This document shows positions 29,093-60,263 of a DNA stretch of 64,000 nucleotides, in pieces. A program made the translations under genes and the position numbers. The first letter of the stretch is position 1, and every line of letters begins with the position of its first letter. Under the pieces are notes generated by a model, which was not told where the DNA came from, searched no databases, and saw only the letters and a list, made by a program, of their open reading frames with translations. Source of the DNA: Oikopleura dioica (lineage: Eukaryota > Animalia > Chordata); assembly GCA_907165135.1 (NCBI GenBank), contig OU015567.1:10726001-10790000 (forward strand), in the 5' to 3' direction.

Positions 29093-32000
29093 TCAGCCCT
29101 TGGCCGTGTTGCGTGAAAGAATCTTCGACACCTTGAAGTGAATAAACTCGCTGCTTTCCTTCGGCGGAAGATAAGTCTTCTGTTCGTCACGGTAGACGAA
29201 TGGAAAGCGAAGCACCCAGATGCTGTTAGAGGAGAGAGTGAATTCCTCAGGCGTGGTTCGGAAAGTAGGCGCGTTGCGACCAGGAGTAACAAGCGGGCGA
29301 ACAGTGATCTCCTGATGGCAATGAGCCGGGATCGCAAACCAGATTCGAGCCAATTGACCGACGGTAGCTGAGGACCGATTTCCTCGAGACGCCGGCCCTG
29401 GAACATAAAGTGGCATGAACTTAATGGGTTCCCAAGACTTGTATCAACCAAGGATCAGACGTGAACGCCTTTCACCCCGGAAAGTTCTGAGGCCCATCTA
29501 TGAATCTAGAATCTGTCCCTGCAATAAAATCTCTTAATACCGTGAATCTCTAAAACTTGTTTATTAGCTCTGACTGAGCGATAGACATGAAAAATCGTAA
29601 ATACAGTGTAAGCCCTAAACTGGTAAAATGCAGAGTGAAGAATCTCTCCGGCTACTTTGCCGTCGAGCGAAGATTCGCCTACGCGGGCCCGAGGCGGAAA
29701 CGCGCAAGTCTGGAGAACCAACACGCCCCGAGACGCAGCATCGTTGTCCGCGTCGTAGTCCTAGCATTAAAGTGAAGAAAATAGGAGTCTTGGCAGGTAC
29801 TAATAACGACCTCGTGGGTAGGCACGTTTATAGGGACCGAAACGTCCACCACGATTTCCCCGCTTGTATTTGTGTTGGCCGTGCCGGCCGAGTCGACCAG
29901 CGAGGGAACGCGGTTGTTCCGGAGAAGGTCCAGCAGGGGCGCTAGAGGGCTGAGCGCCAGTATCGCTGTTTGAGGAGCTGGCATTGCGGGCTGAACCTAA
30001 GTTAAAGAAATTGTGAGTCGAGGCAGTACCGGACGTACCAGCGCTGTCCCGAGACTCAGTTTTGGAGGAAGAAGCTTCGCCAGATGAATTTTTCTGAGCT
30101 CGTCCTTTGGCGATAAAGCTGCGCAAGGAGCTCTGACCGCCTAGTAGGCTGGCGTTTGCGCAGTACGCATATTTCGAGCTAGGGTTGAACAATTTGTAGA
30201 CCAGCTTGCTGATCTTCTTGTAATCCTCTGATCGAGGAAAAGTTCGTTGATCGAAGACTGGCGCGGCTTTCTGGAGTGCACAAAGCAACTCGTGCTGGAG
30301 CGCCTTGACTTTAAAGTTGGCTTCCCGGGTTGGGAGTAATTGCCCGTGCTGTTTGACCGTCAGCTTGCGTTCCTTGGCGTCCTTGAGGGCGCTTTGATAT
30401 TCATGCATCGATAGGTCGACGCTGCCGAGGTCGATTACACTTCCTGGCTCATCGTCCGAGTCCTCGTGGACAGTCGGACTTTGAGGGACGTGAAAAATTT
30501 CGGTCAGTCGTTGGTCCAGGCGGCTGACAAATGGACTCGAGTCAGCGGGTGGAATAAATTCCGGACTCTGAGAGGGTGCTTTGGATACGTAACGCTGAAT
30601 TGAGTCTCCACGGGCTCTTTCGAGGGTTGAGGAGATGGCTCTACGGGGAGCACGGCTGAAGATGGCAGCTCGGGCGGGACCGAACCGGCCGGTTCTTGCT
30701 CTTGAGCCAGATCCGACGGCTCGGGAGTCGATTCTCTTGGTAGTGTCACTGATTCGCCGGTGACGTGTTCAGGCGACGCCTCAACATCGCTGAACTCGTT
30801 GACATACGGCTCGAGGAGACTGTCGAAGGCGGATTCGACCGACGCCTCTGGATCCATTTCTTTTATCTAGAAATATGAAATACGTTAGTAACGGTATCAT
30901 ATCAGTTTTCAAGGCTGAAATGGTTAAAAAGAAAATTCTAATGGCACAGAGAAAAATATCAATATGAACACTAGAATTTCAGAAATTTCTATGTAAAACA
31001 CAACTAAACCTAAATTCTAGCGACAACGCTGTTTGTGAAGAAGTTCAGGGACGCGCCCCGAAACAGCTTTGTCTCTAGAAATTTATGTTAATGAATTGCT
31101 ACGGGCAGAACGCCTACGTTCCTCTGACTGCATTTTTCGAGCCATGTTTTCGTCAGAGTCGATCTGACGGGTCTGTGCTCGTGTTTTTGCTCTTTGAGTA
31201 TTTGGGTACGGTAAACGAGGATTAACCCTTAATCTATTTCGTTTCGGACCGATCGATGATTTGGGCTTTATCACCGGGATGGTATTTGTGCTAGAAACGG
31301 GATTTTTGTCCGCGTTTTCAGCAGTGTCGAGGTAACGTTCCTCAGTCTGATCTGGTGGGGGAAGAGCAGGGAGATCAGCTGAAGAGTCCTCCGACTGATT
31401 TTTGCCGGTCTGAGGAACTAGAGGGGTAGGAGCTACAGGAATGTGCATATCGTTGGATTCTGGGGTTGAAGCTTGAGTATTTTCGAGTGGAGTGGGAATT
31501 GTTTTGGGAATGGGAATGGATAAATTGGGGAAATAGGGAATCACGCCGAGTTCCGGTTTTCGAGCGACCTGTTTGATGACGCACGATCTGTGCATCCAGT
31601 CGCGATTTCCGTCATCGTCACAGATCAAAACGACGTGGCCATTTGATCTAAGCACTGTGTACGGACCAAGCCAACGTAATTTTGTGCGCTTAGCGATGGA
31701 GGAAACCTCTTTTCGAACTAGCACCTGGTCACCGTGCAACAATGGCTCAGGTTCTATGTGAGGCTTTTTGGAACTTACCAAATTATCGGCGTGAGATTGA
31801 CAAATTTGGATCTTTTTGAAGAGCATATCTGTGATTTTCGCTCTATTTTGTAAGTACTCAGAGACGTCTTTTCCCTTAGCCGTCTCAGGCACTTTATCAT
31901 ATTCTGTGATACGGGGAATTACGCCAAAAACGACTTCGAATGGAATCGCTTTTGTTGAACGATTCGGCGAGCAATTCATGACGTAACAGACCCTTTTTAT

Positions 32001-35000
32001 GACACAGGTCCAGTCGATGCCGAAGTGGTGGCACAGTATGTAAGTGGCGTTCTTCATTTCCCTATGTCGACTCTCCAACAAACTACAGCTTTGTGGTCTG
32101 AAGGAAATATGATAACGCCAGCGAAGTGAGTTGAGTGCGGCGAATTCGGCGTTTAGTTGAGAACAGAAATGTTTGCCACGATCGGTCGAAATAATCTCTG
32201 GAGTAGGATAATTGTCCAGTAAATTTTCGGACAGACCTTTTACTGCATCAATTGCGCGGCATCTTTTTGTTGGAACACATATGATAAATTTGGAGAAAGT
32301 ACAAAGTATGGTCAAACCGTACTTGTATCCTCCTTTCCCAAGTGGGAATTCGACGAAGTCCACGTGGATGCGCTGGAACGGGTATTCACCCTTAACGGTG
32401 GGTTGAAATCCGGGATCCTGGTGTCGGCCGCGCAGACCTTTACTGTGTTGACAGTAGCAACTTCTGACGTAATTTTCAATGTCAGCCGACATTGATGGCC
32501 AAGTTACGTGAGACATATACTCTGTCATGCGTTTTCCTCCAGCGTGTAGTCGTTGGTCGTGGAATGAATTGAGAATCTCCGGACGAAGAAGACGAGGAAT
32601 ATAGATCTTTTTGTCTAGGAGTAGCGCGCCTGTTTCTTCGCAAAGGGATAGTTTTTTTGAAATGTTGAGCTAAGTAAGTAGCTTCTTCACATTTCTTGTC
32701 GTATCTGTGCTCTTGATTATGTTTGAGAGCCGTGACTGCGTCACAGATAGCTTCATCAGCTGACTGCTCCGAGGTAATAGATAATTTCTGAGGAAGACCC
32801 ACTTCAAGTGGAACTTTCTCCGAAACTGCAGCGACTAACCCGTGGTCGTTGCAGAGTGCGTCTGAGTTGAAGGATATTTTAGGACGATTTTCCTTGTTTA
32901 CCCAGCTGGGCACATAGATTTTGAATCCCATGAACTCGTGAAAACTCCCAGCGGGCTCGCTAGCGCCTTGGCGACTAGGCCGCCGGGTGTCGAGATCAGC
33001 AGGGCGACTGAAGTAGTCAGCAACGCAGTTGTCCTCTCCTTCGATATAAATTATCACAAAATCGTACTGTGATAAATAAGTCCACCAACGATTGAGCTTA
33101 TCATTCTTCGCCAATTTACTGTCAATGTAAGTTAAACTTCTGTGATCGGTTTTGACCGTGAATGATGCACCGGCCAAATAGTACCGACAGTCGCTGACCG
33201 CGGTTATGAGTGCAAGAGCCTCTCTTTCTGTTGTAGAGTACTTTTGCTGGCAGTCAGAAAAGGTCTTTGAACCAACTCTGATAATGCGAGACTTACCTTC
33301 TACTACTTGCAACAGACACCAGCCGCTCGCGATGGCACTTGCATCTGTACAGAGACAAAATGGAACTGAGAAATCTGGAAACCAGATCGTCGAAGGAGAT
33401 GCCAGCCTGGCTTTGATTTTGTTGAAAGCCTTTTCTGCTTCTGAATCCCAATGAAATGGGCCCTTGGGCCGATTCTTGCGAACCAGAGCTGTGATTGGCT
33501 TGATGAGGTGGCTGAAACAGGTGGAAGAAACCGGGTCACCTGGTTTTGTCGCGCAGAAGGATCGGACCCACTGGCAAAGGCCAATGAGTGACTGTAATCC
33601 CTTGAAATCCTGAGGAGCTTTCATGTTGGTGATAGCTTTTACGTTGTCAGGATCGGGATACTGACCATTCGAATCGATTACACGTCCCAACCACTTTACC
33701 GATGGATGGAGAACGAACACTTTCTTCCCTCCAACGGCAAAGCCGTATTCAGTGAGAACTCCGAGGAGCTCATCGAGAGTGGCCAAAAAATCTTCGAAAT
33801 TGTTGTGGAATACTAAGACATCGTCTACAAATGCCTTGCAATTCGAGCGATGTTTCATGTTTCGCATTGCGTGATTTACCGCCCGGCAAAACAAGTGACC
33901 GCTGGTACGCAACCCAAAGGGTAAACGACTAAACATGAGTGTTTCGTTGTTCCATGTGATCGCGAGTTTGTGCTGGTCCTCGGGTCGAACACCAATATTC
34001 CAGAACCCGGCCGCGAGGTCCAGGACACCGAAATATTTGTTTCCGGGGGGAATTTCGATTTCTTGTTCCATGTATGGTAAGCTGAAGGTGTCAGCGTTGC
34101 GCAGAAGAGGGTTAACCGACAAGTTAAGATGGAGTATCATTCTCGTGTCGCCGTTTGATTTTAAAACACCACCAATCGGTGTATTAAAACCTCGAGAATT
34201 CGGACAAGGTTTGAGAATACCGAGTTTCTTCAGTTTCTCGACCTGTTCCGTAAGCGGTTCTACGAATCTTTCAGGAGTTCGAAACTGTGGAATGTGGCGA
34301 GACTTGCCGGGGATGGTGTCGATTTCTGCGAGATATCCCTTGAATTTACCGACAGGGCGATTCTCCGTGGAAAATGCCTGCCGGCGAGATACTAAAAAGA
34401 GTAAGGCAATTCTGCGAGCTTCACTCGGATCATCGCCAATGTGAATGTTCGCACCAATTTCTGATTTGACGATGTCGACTAACTCGTTTGTACTCATCGA
34501 ATCGTACGCGGCGTGAACACCGTTTTCATCCGCGCGTTTAAAGAAGGATTGACGCTTGGGGTCATTCACGTAAGGAATACGAATTCGTTGATTCCTTATC
34601 GATTTGAAAAATAATGTTTGATCATCCAAGTCTTGTTTGATTTCAGAGCATCTTTCGTACATAGGGGTTCTTCCGAGAATAGCCGGAATCATCATTGTGT
34701 TTGCTGGTAGAACAAACCAGGTGGTGCGCGGCCAGTGCGAATCTGGACCGATTTTTATATCAGAAACAACCTTTCCGATGCATGAATTATTACTTCCTAT
34801 GCCTCGAACAGTTTGATCTGTAGGTTCTATTTTTAAATCCAAATCTTGGACGACTTTTTCAGAAATAAGACTACCGAAAGAGCCGGGATCGTATAGGGTA
34901 GGTACCCACATGTCGGTTGTCCCGAACATGACAGGTAAATAAGTCGCTCCCGAAATGCCAAATGGATTCGGTTGAAACAGGATGGGCTTGTGTGTAGTTG

Positions 35001-38000
35001 CTATCTGTCCGGCGAATTCGCCGGACATGTCTAGTTTTTTGACTTCTCTTGTGTAGCTTCTGTATGTGAGACGAGATTCGTGTCGTAACAAGCAAAGCTG
35101 GGATCATACTGGGAATATGTTGATTGATCTGTGTAGTATGCGCTATCGTCGGCTTCGGGCTGCTCAGGAGCCTGGAAGCTTTCGAACTGCGGTTGGTAGT
35201 AGTCGCCTTGATGGACGACGTCAGGTTGAGCTGGTGGCTCAAATTGAGGGATTATCTGTTCTGGCTCATCCGCCGGAAGTGGCAATGGAACGTAAGACTC
35301 GTCAAATACCGCGTTTACGCCGTACATGCGAGAGTCGTTCTCGGTTTGGCTACGGTTGTAACCGTTGCCTTGGTTGTTGTAGCCGCTGTTGTATCCGTGG
35401 TTGTAGCCGTTGTTGTTACCTTGGACGCCATTGTTGTAGCCGCCGCGGTAGTTGTGAGACGGGTAACCGCCCCGGGGTGCGCCCCGAGATTGTCCCCGTG
35501 GGTAGAAATTCGCGCGTCGAGGTTGACCGCGATAGAAATTACCGGATGGATGACCGCGCGAAGTGCCCCTGAAAGGAGCACCTCGGTGGCCGTAGCCACC
35601 TCGGTATCCGGCTGGCTGACCTCGATGCTGTCGATAGTAACCTTGTGTAGTACTGGATTTATCGCTTTGCTTCTGCTTTTTGGAAGCATCCGCCCCGTCG
35701 GCAGCATTGACAGACTTGAAGCCGGTTTGAGAAGATAGAATTTCAGCGCGAGCTGAGAGCTGCTCTGAATTGTCGAAGTTATTCAGCTCGACGATTATCG
35801 AATTGTACAATTCGGAAGATTCCGATCGCACACACTGGAGCATTTTCGTGATGAGCATAATGCCAAAGGCGTCGCGGAATGATGGCTCCCTCTGCTTATT
35901 GTCTTGTTTGATCAGGATCGCCTTGATGTTTTTCTCATAGGAGGTGATGATAGGTTCGATGCTGTTCTGCAATTCGCAGTGAAATTCGGTGAAGCCCATT
36001 CCGCTCTTTTTCGGCTTGCTCCACCAATTTTCCATGAGTTGGAAGACGTTTTGGACTAAGCCGTAGTTGCTTGTCAAACATCGTGCCAACTCATCCATTG
36101 ATTTTACGTCGCAGTTGTCTATGGTCTTGTTGACAGATACGCTCATCTTTGGTCTAATGGCCGCCAAAAACTTCGTAAAGCTAATGGTCGGACATGATTC
36201 CCGAATGGCCCTGATTCGGCTGATGTACTGAGCCGTTTGATCTTGGGCACCGCCGCTGAACTTGCCGAGATTGCTTAGCCCAGATACCAGGAGGTTAGTC
36301 TCCAAGTAGTCGGACGAAGCGGCTCCGTTCGCTGGAGAATTCTCGGAAGTGTCTCTTTTTGACATGTAAAGATCGCAAAGTTTCGCTTTTAACTCGGCTA
36401 ATTCTTTTACATGTTTGTCCTTTGCAGCGATTTCTTCGGTTGATGTGGGTGGTCTCTCAGTGTACGTGTCGACGATGGCTTTCTTTCGAATAATCTCTCG
36501 CTGAATTTCTTCCATCGCTAGAAAAAAAAATTGATTGATTTTTGTCGAATTGAATTGACTCTGCGAAGGGCTTTTTATATTTGAAAAAAAAAAAAATAAA
36601 ATCTTTATTTTTAATATTTATCATTGTTTTTAATATTTATCATTGTTTTTAATATTTGTCATTGTTTGTTGTTATTTTGATCGAAAGAATGAACCTTGAC
36701 CACCCGGGCGTTAGCATTTTTGAAGAATCGACGTGAGCCGATTCTGGCGCTTTATTATCATTTTTATTTGTTTCTGTGTATCTTGGCCATAACATCATGG
36801 TCGCCTTATATCCGGAGTAGGCGCCAAGTGCTAAGAGATTGCCGCGTCTAGAATAGTCGACATTTAGATCGCGCCTTTCTCGAGCGCCGTTGACATTGTA
36901 TTTGATTTTTATCATTTTTCTGTTTTTATCGTCGTTTTGATTTATTTGGACTCCTCGCGAGCGAATACCGGTGATTTGATCGTTTTTCGTTACTCGGAGC
37001 CGCTTCGCGGCTTTTTCGAAGAGACGAAAGGCCCTCTACCGGTATTCTAGTGGCCTTATGGGCCACTACCGTGTTTTTATTCTCTAAGTAGCTTGTCTTG
37101 TGTCGACTTTGTGTCATTTTTCTCGTATTTCGAAGTCGCCCCGGATGAGGTTCCATTCTCCGAATTTTTATTCATTCTTTTTATAAATCTTATAAAAATT
37201 TTAATAAAAATTGGGGACTCTAGATCCAGATCTTCTGCACCACTAATGGGTTCCCAAGACTTGTATCAACCAAGGATCAGACGTGAACGCCTTTCACCCC
37301 GGAAAGTTCTGAGGCCCATCTATGAATCTAGAATCTGTCCCTGCAATAAAATCTCTTAATACCGTGAATCTCTAAAACTTGTTTATTAGCTCTGACTGAG
37401 CGATAGACATGAAAAATCGTAAATACAGTGTAAGCCCTAAACTGGTAAAATGCAGAGTGAAGAATCTCTCCGGCTACTTTGCCGTCGAGCGAAGATTCGC
37501 CTACGCGGGCCCGAGGCGGAAACGCGCAAGTCTGGAGAACCAACAAACTCGTGATCGAGAAGGACATTCGCGGGAGCGGCAACGCCACTAGATCCACCTT
37601 GGACCATCTTCTGTGGCGACTGCATAAAGAAACGATGTCCACGAATCGTTTCATACTCGTAGCCGATAAAGCCTCGGCAAGACTGGGAAATATCCCAACG
37701 AAGAAGGAAATTCGAACGATTTATGAAACCTTGCTGCTCGATCCCTTTGAGTTCGGAATACCAGCTTAATAATTTAGTTAAGAAAGAGGACGATGAAAGG
37801 AGACTTTTTACCTAAAATCGCCGATTTTCAGACAAGACCACGACGGAAATCTAGGAAGAAGCCCCTTCGGAGAATCGGTTGTTTCCATTCCAGTGAGAAA
37901 TCGATTCTTATTGGCGATAACAGATGTGATATCGTCAAGTGGAACCGTTTCATCAGAACCATCGTTTTCACGATCGCTTTTTTGAGAAGCGGATAGCTGG

Positions 38001-40031
38001 GATTTCGGTCCGTCCAACTGAAAAAGGTTCGACTTAAAAGACGAAAACGGCAGACCTTTAGTTGAGAAAGAACTTCTTGAAGCTGTGCTGACTCTGCATT
38101 GTATGTATCAAAAAAGATCTTGTCTTCTTTCACATGAAGTTTTGACTCCAAATCATCATAAAAAGTATAATTCGCTTCCTCGAGAGTAAAAGGATCATCG
38201 CGCTGGACTTGGATCTCTCCGCATGTAGAAGCGGTAAGAGACTTTGATCTGGAATTGTGAGTCATCACCAATCCGTCACCTGCTTCTCCTGGTAGCCGAT
38301 GCCATTTATGAACGCAGTGTCGATCGGTGAGTGATCTAACTTCGCATAATTGACGGCCATTGTGCCATTCGGCCTTGCACTGCTCTTTCAATTGTTTTTC
38401 GTATGTCTTAATCATTCATTAGAATACATAAATACAAATTTAAAAAAACCTTCGCAGCTGGGCCTCTTGCATATCCATGATAGACCATCAACGCCTGGTC
38501 CACCTGATTGTTATGAATTCGAGTCGTATAATGCGATGGAAGATTGGTCAAATAAGTCTTGTATGCCTCTGGCACAAGTTTACCACATCGCTGGTCAGAG
38601 AAAGTCCATTCTGGATTCAGAGCTTTTTGAAGCTTTGCAAGGACAGCCTCTCGCATTTCATATGCTTTTGTAGAATCCTCTTCCCCGATGCTTTCCGGAA
38701 CTCTGCCTTGGACAATGTATTGGAACAAGATATCAGCTACTGGAAGCAGCTGGTTGAGTTCAACGGGCTCTTGAGATCTTGAACGAGATCTTGAGGACTT
38801 TCCACAAATGTTGTCAATGTGGACAGAGAGAAAATTCCAAACTTCTTCTCCCTGATCGAGCTTCGACTTCCATGAGTCAAACTCAAGCCACATATCTTCA
38901 GCCCTCCTTCGTTTTGGTAACCATGAGCGATCAGAGGCGGCAATCTCGATATCCCGTTGCACCTTTATCGACTCTTGGAGCAAGTCCAAACAAGCAGGAA
39001 TAGGCAAACACTCTTCATTAATCTTCGACTCCTCTGGCTGCAAAACAAAAATGAAGGCCGTCTTTTCAGAAATCTTGAATAAATTCGAGGGGGTTTTCTC
39101 AGGAATAAGGCGCCCATTCTTGAAAATATTGATTATCTGGCGCTCCATGCAATCAATGAGTTTCTTCTGAGGGACACGCTTCCTCTTTCCTCTTGAATAA
39201 TCGCCATCTGCGAAGTCTCGTAAATCTTCTTGGGACAAACCACATTTTTCAAAAAGAATTAAAAGCTTGGGTTGAGCGATACGAGCATTTTTAATCCAAT
39301 GCGACTCTAAAACCAAAAATTAGTCAATAAAAATGGAAGGAATAACTTACTAGCTCCAATTGAACCGATCAGCATTGAAAGCTGACTTAAGATCAGCTTT
39401 CTGCATTCACTTATGGCCAGAAACTGCGTCGATAGTTCCACATCCAACGATGTACTTGGTTGAACAAGAAGAACAAAGTGACAGATAGACATAAGAAAAA
39501 GCGACTGGATGCACATTTGAACATCGAAATCCTTCAAAATCTTCTGCGCATCAAACTCATTGTCGGTGTTTTCAATCAGCTTCGCGATTTCGATGAGTTT
39601 TGAAAAGTCGTTAGTTCCATTAGGGATGAGAAAGATCACTTTCTCTGTGGCACACCAGTAAATGTCGATTCCGCTGTCAGCGAAGGTAGCGGCTTTTCTG
39701 AATTCGCGTTTGGGACGAAGAAGCGGAAACAGAACCTGTCCAAAGAGAATTATAACAATGTATTCATGTCGTAACGAACCTGATCTAATTTCTTTCCAAA
39801 GCGACTTTTTCCAATTAGAGATATAATGCAAAATTTCTGACCACATGAACTAAGCCACTCAAAAGCATCGTCATACAATTTCAAAGCTTCCAAGTTGTAT
39901 TCAATGAGCTTCGAATCGTCTAGAAGGTCATCAGTGGGGATCGTCTCCTCCTCGCTCTCTAGCGGAGGGATTGAAGGAGATTCAATATCTGAGCGAGATT
40001 TGACCTCAGAATCCGCATCTTCCTCAACCAT
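29093..40031 (-). CDS. SMG8: Nonsense-mediated decay factor SMG8; last exon interrupted by the LTR element at 29422-37545
   Basis: GRQLCEVRSLTDRHCVHKWH, RDDPFTLEEANYTFY, PKGLLPRFPSWS and FIGYEYE upstream; MPLY..QLARIW..WVLRFPFVY downstream. Removing the element and one TSD gives in-frame DHEFMPLY. Confidence 0.9.
29422..29723 (-). repeat. 3' LTR (302 bp; TGTTGG...CCCATTA on element strand)
   Basis: Identical by eye to 37244-37545; AATAAA present on element strand. Confidence 0.95.
29800..30857 (-). CDS. Retrotransposon ORF3, non-envelope accessory protein in two overlapping frames (30857-30504 and about 30770-29800)
   Basis: Acidic Pro/Ser-rich N-part, helical middle, RGG-like basic end; no signal peptide or TM segment; preceded by a branch point and AG. 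Confidence 0.6.
30867..30890 (-). promoter_or_regulatory. Branch point and 3' splice acceptor for ORF3
   Basis: TACTAAC-GTATTTCATATTTCTAG|ATAAAAGAAATG. Confidence 0.7.
31083..35040 (-). CDS. pol: Retrotransposon pol (protease, RT, RNase H, integrase); one extra A in an A7 run at 32652-32658 splits it into two ORFs
   Basis: TLYDPGS (PR); LDLAAGFWNI, LPFGL, FVDD (RT); TDAS, EREALA, TDH (RH); H..H..C..C, VDF, TDRG, LLESRH (INT). Confidence 0.95.
35006..35040 (-). other. -1 programmed ribosomal frameshift signal at the gag-pol junction
   Basis: A AAA AAC in the gag frame, 6-nt spacer, then the perfect palindrome TGTCCGGCGAATTCGCCGGACA. Confidence 0.85.
35031..36515 (-). CDS. gag: Retrotransposon gag (494 aa)
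   Basis: Long ORF upstream of pol; coiled-coil and capsid-like region (KFSGG..QYISRI); RGG/Tyr-Asn-rich tail. Confidence 0.9.
   Translation of the reverse strand: MEEIQREIIRKKAIVDTYTERPPTSTEEIAAKDKHVKELAELKAKLCDLYMSKRDTSENSPANGAASSDYLETNLLVSGLSNLGKFSGGAQDQTAQYISRIRAIRESCPTISFTKFLAAIRPKMSVSVNKTIDNCDVKSMDELARCLTSNYGLVQNVFQLMENWWSKPKKSGMGFTEFHCELQNSIEPIITSYEKNIKAILIKQDNKQREPSFRDAFGIMLITKMLQCVRSESSELYNSIIVELNNFDNSEQLSARAEILSSQTGFKSVNAADGADASKKQKQSDKSSTTQGYYRQHRGQPAGYRGGYGHRGAPFRGTSRGHPSGNFYRGQPRRANFYPRGQSRGAPRGGYPSHNYRGGYNNGVQGNNNGYNHGYNSGYNNQGNGYNRSQTENDSRMYGVNAVFDESYVPLPLPADEPEQIIPQFEPPAQPDVVHQGDYYQPQFESFQAPEQPEADDSAYYTDQSTYSQYDPSFACYDTNLVSHTEATQEKSKN
36612..36668. repeat. Three tandem 19-bp repeats in the element leader
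   Basis: TAATATTT(A/G)TCATTGTTT(T/G) x3. Confidence 0.8.
37231..37242 (-). other. Putative tRNA primer-binding site
   Basis: TGGTGCAGAAGA 1 nt after the 5' LTR; primer tRNA identity not determined. Confidence 0.7.
37244..37545 (-). repeat. 5' LTR (302 bp)
   Basis: Direct repeat of 29422-29723, followed by the PBS. Confidence 0.95.
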
Positions 40032-59302: not shown

Positions 59303-60263
59303 CTACAATTTGCAGAAAATTTCCGAATCGGCATCGACGATGGAAACAGCTTCCTTTTCAACAAGTAAATCAAGAGTCATCGCGACGTTTATTGAGGCGG
59401 CCGGATGAAGCACTTCAGGAACATCAGCGTAGAGAACTTTCACGATATCACGAATTCTTTTTTCTCCGTTTTCAAGCTGCTCAATAATTTGATTCTCTCT
59501 CATTCTTCTGTGGTTGATGTAAAATTCCACTCGCTCGAGGCCATTTTCAATTACTCCGCCGTGACCGGGAAGAATCAAACAATCTCCAAGCGCACGTATT
59601 TTCTCAAGCGAATTCATGTACGAGTTGTAATTATCAATGACAGTGGTGGAATTGCCGAGTATATTGTCCCCGCTAAACAAAAGAATGAAAATGAGCGTGA
59701 GAATGAATTTTTCATCCCCTTGGAAACAGAGCTCGGGATAATTACCTGAATAAGACTCGCTCGTCTTTCATCCACAAACAAATATGATCATCCGCGTGGC
59801 CCGGTGTAAACAGAACTTGAATTTTCCTACCGCACGATGTTTCCAAGACATCCCCATCCGTCAAAAAATTCCAAAACTGTTCCTCGAATTTCGGTATTTT
59901 TACGCCAGAAGGCATCTTCTCTCCTGCGCCTTTATAAACCTTCGGGTAAGGCACTCGTTTATGCTTGAACAGAGGAATGTCGCCACAAATTTCTCGCTGG
60001 ATTGCCTCAACTCCGCCGATATGGTCGAAGTGCCAGTGGGAGATGATGATTTTATCGATCTCACACTTTTCGGCCTCAAGGACTTGAGTCAGCGACTTAA
60101 CAACGGACTCCTCATTCGGCGATCCTGTATCAAGTAAAACTCTGCGCTGCCCACTGCCGATAAGATAACAGTTAGTCCCCTCTCCAGTCATTGGGGATGG
60201 GTTTCTAGCGAGGATTCTTATTATGCTTGGGGATATTCTGTTGATGTAGCGTAAGCCCGACAT
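59303..60263 (-). CDS. LACTB2: Metallo-beta-lactamase endoribonuclease LACTB2
   Basis: NPSPMTGEGTNCYLIG, SHWHFDHIGG, TPGHADDH, SGDNILG, PGHG. Confidence 0.9.

Follow-up and report, generated by a model that had tools for sequence, protein, structure and literature searches.

Splice-acceptor-like signals precede gag and a third open reading frame in a young Ty3/gypsy element of Oikopleura dioica

The 64,000-nucleotide (nt) stretch of Oikopleura dioica DNA analyzed here (assembly GCA_907165135.1, contig OU015567.1, positions 10,726,001 to 10,790,000; hereafter the window) carries on its minus strand, at 29422-37545, an 8,124-bp long terminal repeat (LTR) retrotransposon in which splice-acceptor-like signals stand directly before gag and before a third open reading frame (ORF3). 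Read 5' to 3', the element consists of an LTR, a stretch resembling a primer-binding site (PBS), a leader, gag, pol, a spacer, ORF3 and the 3' LTR (Table 1). Both signals are real, in that they exceed what chance would place there. The branch point, pyrimidine tract and AG before ORF3 most likely form a working 3' splice site, which would yield a subgenomic ORF3 mRNA. The case for the motif before gag is weaker; this motif may serve to bypass an ATG-laden leader, as the acceptor of either a spliced leader or a leader intron, or it may be a product of chance. The 5' partner of the ORF3 acceptor cannot be read from the sequence. Our tentative first choice is a cis donor on a transcript started in the LTR. 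Trans-splicing of the host spliced leader at both sites is unlikely, as is an unspliced transcript from an internal promoter, and chance is the least probable explanation of all. Throughout, we infer the use of splice sites and start sites from the anatomy, motifs and statistics observed here.

The signal before ORF3 is the stronger of the two. As the earlier note on this DNA had described, a perfect TACTAAC and a TTTCTAG lie at the end of an AT-rich spacer, with the ORF3 ATG (30857) 9 nt past the AG. TACTAAC occurs five times in 128 kb (both strands of the window), and only the copy before ORF3 leads into a pyrimidine run that ends in an AG. Acceptors near start codons were scored as at least five pyrimidines plus an AG ending 0-10 nt upstream of an ATG, an arrangement found at 46 of the 1,968 ATGs in the window (2.3%), those of gag and ORF3 among them. 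Could both motifs be unused by-products of T-rich, CTAG-rich non-coding DNA? Pyrimidine runs followed by AG are common on the sense strand of the element (3.1 per kb), which favors such an explanation, and two frame changes together with a location in a host exon mean that the copy itself is not evidence of function. However, even if the motif density of the element itself is taken as the background, the probability that both motifs would be so placed is only about 0.1%, and the TACTAAC before ORF3 is unique in its context. We therefore regard chance as very improbable. Splicing at the ORF3 acceptor would also remove the only ATG of the spacer (30900), the reading frame of which overlaps the ORF3 start out of frame. 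The presence of this upstream ATG provides support for an acceptor that is paired in cis.

According to the earlier note, both acceptors were unpaired. By the donor pentamers that the note itself used, this description stands for gag, the leader of which holds none of them, but it does not stand for ORF3. The donor scan behind it had ended at the leader, so that gag-pol lay outside, and the gag-pol sense strand upstream of ORF3 contains 14 donor pentamers (GTAAG, GTGAG, GTAAA or GTATG; 16 expected). Two GTAAAA sites within gag are in phase 0 (Table 1). Because these putative donors (36410 and 36107) share this phase and the 9 nt between the ORF3 acceptor and its ATG contain no stop codon, a splice from either one would read in frame into the ORF3 ATG, a frame match that is phase arithmetic only.

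Related elements offer precedents for such a splice. Henriet et al. (2015) applied cap-selective 5' rapid amplification of cDNA ends (RACE) to Tor elements (PMC4402516). With gag or pol primers, every tested element was found to start in the 5' LTR, and the env mRNA of Tor3a was cis-spliced from the LTR transcript, using an ordinary acceptor before env and a non-canonical GA donor close to where gag begins (PMC4402516). In Caenorhabditis elegans, Cer1 produces a spliced 2.4-kb mRNA whose reading frame passes from N-terminal Gag peptides into sequence farther downstream (Dennis et al., 2012; PMC3315495). By the precedent of Tor3a and Cer1, the likeliest partner of the ORF3 acceptor would be a cis donor on an LTR-started transcript. 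The first canonical candidate is the GTAAAA found at codon 35 of gag, a splice from which would preserve the frame. Like Tor3a, the present element is a Ty3/gypsy element of Oikopleura with a putative splice acceptor upstream of a third ORF. It differs from Tor3a in having candidate donors where Tor3a has a mapped GA donor, a non-envelope ORF3 where Tor3a has an envelope gene, and a 225-nt spacer. Cer1 resembles it as a Ty3/gypsy element in a spliced-leader host, and both the SL1 acceptor that Cer1 has upstream of gag and its spliced subgenomic mRNA would have putative counterparts here. Cer1 differs in lacking a separate ORF3 set off by a spacer, and its host is a nematode.

A further hint comes from P0003, the only sizeable relative of ORF3, which is O. 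dioica gene model g6294 on chr2 of the Okinawa assembly (OKI2018_I69). Residues 39-128 of P0003 and the C-terminal portion of a sister Gag share 78% identity. This Gag stretch is followed by three residues, a Met and the ORF3 relative, all in frame, and the three residues before the Met equal the 9 nt from acceptor to ORF3 ATG in the window. The arrangement hints that a sister element has its acceptor at this position too and pairs it in cis. The Okinawa gene models were made by AUGUSTUS with RNA-seq hints (PMC8008620).

Several points weigh against a cis donor as the partner. P0003 could be a spliced isoform, but it could also be a pol-less derivative or deletion copy, or a predictor artefact; the window gag has no GT at the place matching the P0003 junction, and the ORF3 N-terminus of P0003 matches the window ORF3 weakly. 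Within the element the cis donor stays a candidate, and the leader is without a canonical donor. By analogy, the spacer and internal promoter of Tor4b would favor an ORF3 mRNA that is either unspliced or leader-spliced. In addition, the A after the AG, a 5' untranslated region (UTR) of 9 nt and the host habit of placing AG directly before ATG would suit a spliced-leader site equally.

The acceptor-like motif before gag was present as the earlier note had read it, with T9 at 36530-36522, C, TAG at 36520-36518, CG, and the ATG at 36515. The leader that precedes it has unusual contents. It holds 14 upstream ATGs, the majority of which have A at -3; the last of the upstream ORFs extends across the gag ATG. 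Three of these ATGs are contributed by a 19-nt tandem repeat detected with Tandem Repeats Finder, and the leader also contains 10 AATAAA or ATTAAA hexamers, compared to about 2.6 expected from composition by our own estimate. A Pfam search of an 88-codon leader ORF gave no match. Given the upstream ATGs, poly(A) hexamers and repeat, the full-length RNA seems ill suited to serve as a gag mRNA by cap-dependent scanning, and the leader itself looks outron-like or intergenic rather than like a translated 5' UTR. It could plausibly be bypassed by a spliced leader, by an intron whose donor is weak or other than GT, by a start farther downstream or by internal ribosome entry. A scan of the entire leader confirmed that it lacks GTAAG, GTGAG, GTAAA and GTATG; composition shuffles contain 3.7 of them on average, and 24 of 1,000 shuffles likewise contain none. 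About 10% of O. dioica donors are non-canonical, chiefly GA-AG (PMC7072748; host splice-site habits are cited here second-hand, via this paper and PMC6389100). Since non-GT donors are common in the host, the missing GT pentamers are weak evidence that the gag acceptor is unpaired.

These features bear on the proposal of the earlier note that both acceptors are unpaired and that each of them, at 36517 and at 30866, receives the host spliced leader by trans-splicing, giving capped gag-pol and ORF3 mRNAs that lack PBS and leader and are thus set apart from packageable RNA. The proposal is favored by the starts of gag and ORF3, 2 and 9 nt past strong acceptors, by a leader empty of donors and rich in good-context upstream ATGs and poly(A) hexamers, and by host genes of the window in which AG abuts the ATG. 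The spliced Cer1 mRNA, which occurs with and without SL1, is a precedent (PMC3315495). The proposal's premise of a host with spliced-leader trans-splicing holds, given the LACTB2 match and the O. dioica relative of ORF3. The LACTB2 exon (59745-60263) is 82% identical to NCBI Oikopleura dioica LACTB2 and 94% identical to a protein from a public-read assembly, and the source of the window is probably a different lineage within the O. dioica species complex.

The host pattern of an acceptor followed by ATG was upheld in part. Four host genes start with AG/ATG or AG/AATG, namely LACTB2 (60263), an HD-family gene (24997), SMG8 (40031) and EF-1 beta/delta (15078), against a background of 9.7% of all ATGs in the window. 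HINT3, which the earlier note had also listed, was not verified, and the downstream support for a dynein-type start (43643) consists of WD40 only; PDB sequence searches with the dynein-type and EF-1 first exons were uninformative. The element resembles host spliced-leader genes in having an AG a few bases from its ATGs and, at ORF3, an A after the AG. It differs from them in distance, with 2 nt (gag) and 9 nt (ORF3) between AG and ATG compared to 0-1 nt in the host genes.

Other observations argue against the spliced leader being trans-spliced at both sites. Tor RACE gave LTR starts, and cis-splicing or internal starts for env, in a paper that never mentions the spliced leader (PMC4402516), and text searches of the literature turned up no account of Tor elements using the spliced leader. 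What is published on related elements favors ordinary splicing or else an internal promoter. In Cer1, the 8-kb gag-pol RNA is not subject to trans-splicing (PMC3315495). The AG before gag is followed by C, whereas A is usual after the AG of Oikopleura trans-splice sites (PMC6389100), and the gag-pol donor pentamers upstream of ORF3 offer candidate partners in cis. Acceptor-like motifs number 17 on the gag-pol sense strand, compared to 10 expected, so we rejected the idea that they had been purged there, as they should be if every motif of this kind underwent trans-splicing; an acceptor motif alone therefore cannot suffice for trans-splicing. The description of the element as built like a host operon had to be dropped. 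Oikopleura operons are defined by intercistronic distances that do not exceed 60 bp (PMC7986045), while 216 nt separate pol from the ORF3 acceptor, and the link between gag and pol is a -1 slippery heptamer and not trans-splicing. Because of the spacing and the frameshift site, we rejected an operon-like resolution of gag, pol and ORF3. Use of the host spliced-leader system by the two acceptors cannot be shown from sequence alone, and on balance we consider it improbable.

A second signal, the hexamer TCTAGA, marks the non-coding parts of the element. Counting one LTR, it occurs 5 times in 1,255 nt of element non-coding DNA compared to 0.36 in dinucleotide shuffles (about 14-fold non-coding enrichment), and none of 2,000 shuffles reached 5. 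It is absent from the 6.5 kb of element coding DNA and occurs at 0.125 per kb in the remaining window. Two copies lie in the leader. The spacer, which has no poly(A) hexamer, contains TTTCTAGA twice, once 4 nt past the pol stop and once at the ORF3 acceptor. T-rich TCTAGA is the core promoter element of >70% of male-specific O. dioica transcription, where it sets a male-specific start site 40-50 nt downstream, and in 89 host promoters the AGA of TCTAGA doubles as a trans-splice site (PMC6389100, which has nothing on Tor or retrotransposons). The element shares with these promoters the hexamer and its T-rich context, and the overlap of AGA with a trans-splice site is mirrored by TTTCTAGA before ORF3. 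It differs in that the ORF3 motif would put the start within the ORF.

These counts raise the possibility that the T-rich TCTAGA copies are male-germline core promoters and not acceptors, in which case an unspliced ORF3 mRNA would start about 45 nt past 31079 and the gag-proximal TCTAGC would be a degenerate copy. Both the excess in non-coding DNA and the host role of the hexamer favor this reading. Some Tor elements are expressed in testis (PMC4402516), which the enrichment of TCTAGA may explain. Moreover, the env mRNAs of Tor3b and Tor4b start at an internal promoter and "lacked evidence of splicing", with the Tor4b start lying in a systematic spacer after pol; the main text of that paper reports no splice acceptor before env in Tor3b or Tor4b (PMC4402516). 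A spacer between pol and the third ORF is a feature that Tor4b and the present element have in common. Nevertheless, the details fit poorly. When the 40-50 nt rule (PMC6389100) is applied to the motif at 31079, the predicted start falls near 31030, within the spacer, and an unspliced mRNA from there would retain the upstream ATG that overlaps the ORF3 start. The copy at the ORF3 acceptor (30871) would start transcripts inside ORF3, past its only in-frame ATG, and thus cannot be the ORF3 promoter. A start set by the LTR motif would lie downstream of the only LTR AATAAA, a poor fit with a repeated R region. Finally, a perfect branch point at the right distance would be left unexplained. We therefore doubt that ORF3 is expressed from an unspliced internal transcript. 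A transcript from near 31030 would instead carry one upstream ATG and no strong donor, followed by the acceptor, and in this respect would be outron-like. Spacer-started transcripts of this kind, suggested by the TCTAGA past the pol stop, could take the spliced leader, while the cis donor would serve transcripts started in the LTR.

The identification of the element as an LTR retrotransposon in an Oikopleura host, made in the earlier note, was borne out by agreement among the LTRs, the Pfam domains, and the relatives of LACTB2 and ORF3. The two LTRs are identical at 302 of 302 bases and both are flanked by the same 4-bp AGTT; the insertion is therefore very young. Searched separately, the pieces of pol matched in order Asp_protease_2 (weakly), RVT_1, RT_RNaseH, rve and Integrase_H2C2. 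Because Pfam finds reverse transcriptase, RNase H, and the core and zinc-binding domains of integrase, together with a weak protease, the element is a Ty3/gypsy LTR retrotransposon. Its Oikopleura host and its relatives in Oikopleura genomes assign it to the Tor type. The product of gag is 68% identical to P0001 over its full length, and P0001 begins with the same six residues; a Pfam search of gag gave no match. We observed no CCHC knuckle in gag (35031-36515); a long stretch of it is instead enriched in arginine, glycine and tyrosine. Translation of gag and pol would follow the retroviral style, with pol reached by a -1 slip at A-AAA-AAC.

Pol and ORF3 are each broken by a single frame change; gag is unbroken, and no further interruption was seen. 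These two changes (29800-35091) are at odds with LTRs that are 100% identical. They could be small assembly errors, or the copy could be defective and have been mobilised with proteins from other elements. A tRNA scan of the window for a match to the primer found no tRNA gene, tblastn and blastn searches with the element detected neither another copy nor a fragment elsewhere in the window, and Rfam at gathering score found no family in the window. A bacterial promoter and terminator scan of the spacer is not meaningful in an Oikopleura host.

Table 1. Positions of the element's features and of the interrupted host gene in the window.
Feature	Position	Strand	Description
5' LTR	37244..37545	minus	302 bp; one AATAAA (37387), one TCTAGA (37332-37327)
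PBS-like stretch	37225..37242	minus	starts TGG, one base past the LTR; by position and sequence; extent inferred
Leader	36516..37243	minus	728 nt, 37% GC
19-nt tandem repeat	36608..36667	minus	3.2 copies, an ATG in each; Tandem Repeats Finder
gag acceptor-like motif T9-C-TAG	36518..36530	minus	2 nt before gag ATG
gag	35031..36515	minus	494 amino acids, intact ORF
First canonical donor-like site GTAAAA	36405..36410	minus	exactly 35 codons into gag, phase 0
Second GTAAAA donor-like site	36102..36107	minus	phase 0
Slippery heptamer A-AAA-AAC	35034..35040	minus	directly before gag stop; classical -1 type
pol	31083..35091	minus	protease, reverse transcriptase, RNase H, integrase; -1 frame relative to gag; one frame change
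pol-ORF3 spacer	30858..31082	minus	225 nt from pol stop to ATG, 216 nt to AG; 33% GC
TCTAGA after pol	31074..31079	minus	T-rich context; begins 4 nt past pol stop
Branch-point match TACTAAC	30884..30890	minus	branch A 18 nt from AG
ORF3 acceptor TTTCTAG	30867..30873	minus	A follows; also in TCTAGA (30871-30866)
ORF3	29800..30857	minus	two open pieces, one frame change
3' LTR	29422..29723	minus	302 bp
TCTAGA, first plus-strand base	29505, 30866, 31074, 36847, 37219, 37327		all in LTRs, leader and spacer
Target-site duplication AGTT, 5' copy	37546..37549	minus	
Target-site duplication AGTT, 3' copy	29418..29421	minus	
SMG8, part upstream of insertion	37550..40031	minus	Pfam Smg8_Smg9 positions 41-155, 154-428, 426-536, 740-776
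SMG8, part downstream of insertion	29093..29417	minus	Pfam Smg8_Smg9 positions 785-877 of 882

Judged by its sequence features, ORF3 is not an envelope gene. Its top 19-residue hydropathy is 0.68, and it has no transmembrane stretch, two cysteines and no F-x-G. In contrast, the Env proteins of Tor3b and Tor4b have a C-terminal transmembrane domain, F-x-G, an aromatic-flanked N-[LV]-G and seven cysteines; ORF3 has one N[LV]G and lacks the remainder of this set. A Pfam search of ORF3 gave no match. Its second piece has three relatives (P0003, P0004 and P0005) among 1.8 billion representatives, and all four proteins have in common a core of about 100 amino acids. AlphaFold models the core as helices with a predicted local distance difference test (pLDDT) score near 90, and a fold search with the ORF3 model against the PDB found no match at an E of 0.001 or better. 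ORF3 thus belongs to a small family without known function. In the window ORF3, an acidic N-terminal part is followed by the core and then by an arginine-glycine tail that resembles gag in composition.

The element sits in sense orientation within SMG8 (~29093-40031, minus strand), a nonsense-mediated-decay factor. The flanks match Smg8_Smg9 positions 740-776 and 785-877, and the reading phase of SMG8 is equal on either side of the target site; the last coding exon of SMG8 is therefore interrupted. We thus interpret the element as a very recent Tor-type Ty3/gypsy copy inserted in sense into this exon. The insertion looks recent and is perhaps heterozygous or polymorphic.

Retroviruses and their relatives have to divide one transcript among translation, packaging and subgenomic mRNAs. 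For Tor elements, two solutions were already known, cis-splicing and an internal promoter (PMC4402516). The present element adds a non-envelope third ORF preceded by a 3' splice site of textbook form, a leader that resembles an outron and has an acceptor at the gag ATG, and a male-germline promoter motif in strong excess in all non-coding parts. If the spliced leader is not used, this is an ordinary Tor relative with retrovirus-like splicing. A bolder possibility, to which we give little weight, is that a chordate retrovirus-like element took over the spliced-leader machinery of its host, with the leader acting as an outron that keeps spliced-leader gag-pol mRNA separate from packageable genomic RNA, the ORF3 mRNA released likewise, and T-rich TCTAGA doubling, like that of 89 host genes, as a trans-splice acceptor (certain tissues) and a male-germline core promoter (testis). 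If true, no chordate element would have been shown to do this before, and the finding would tie retroelement expression to spliced-leader translational control in O. dioica.

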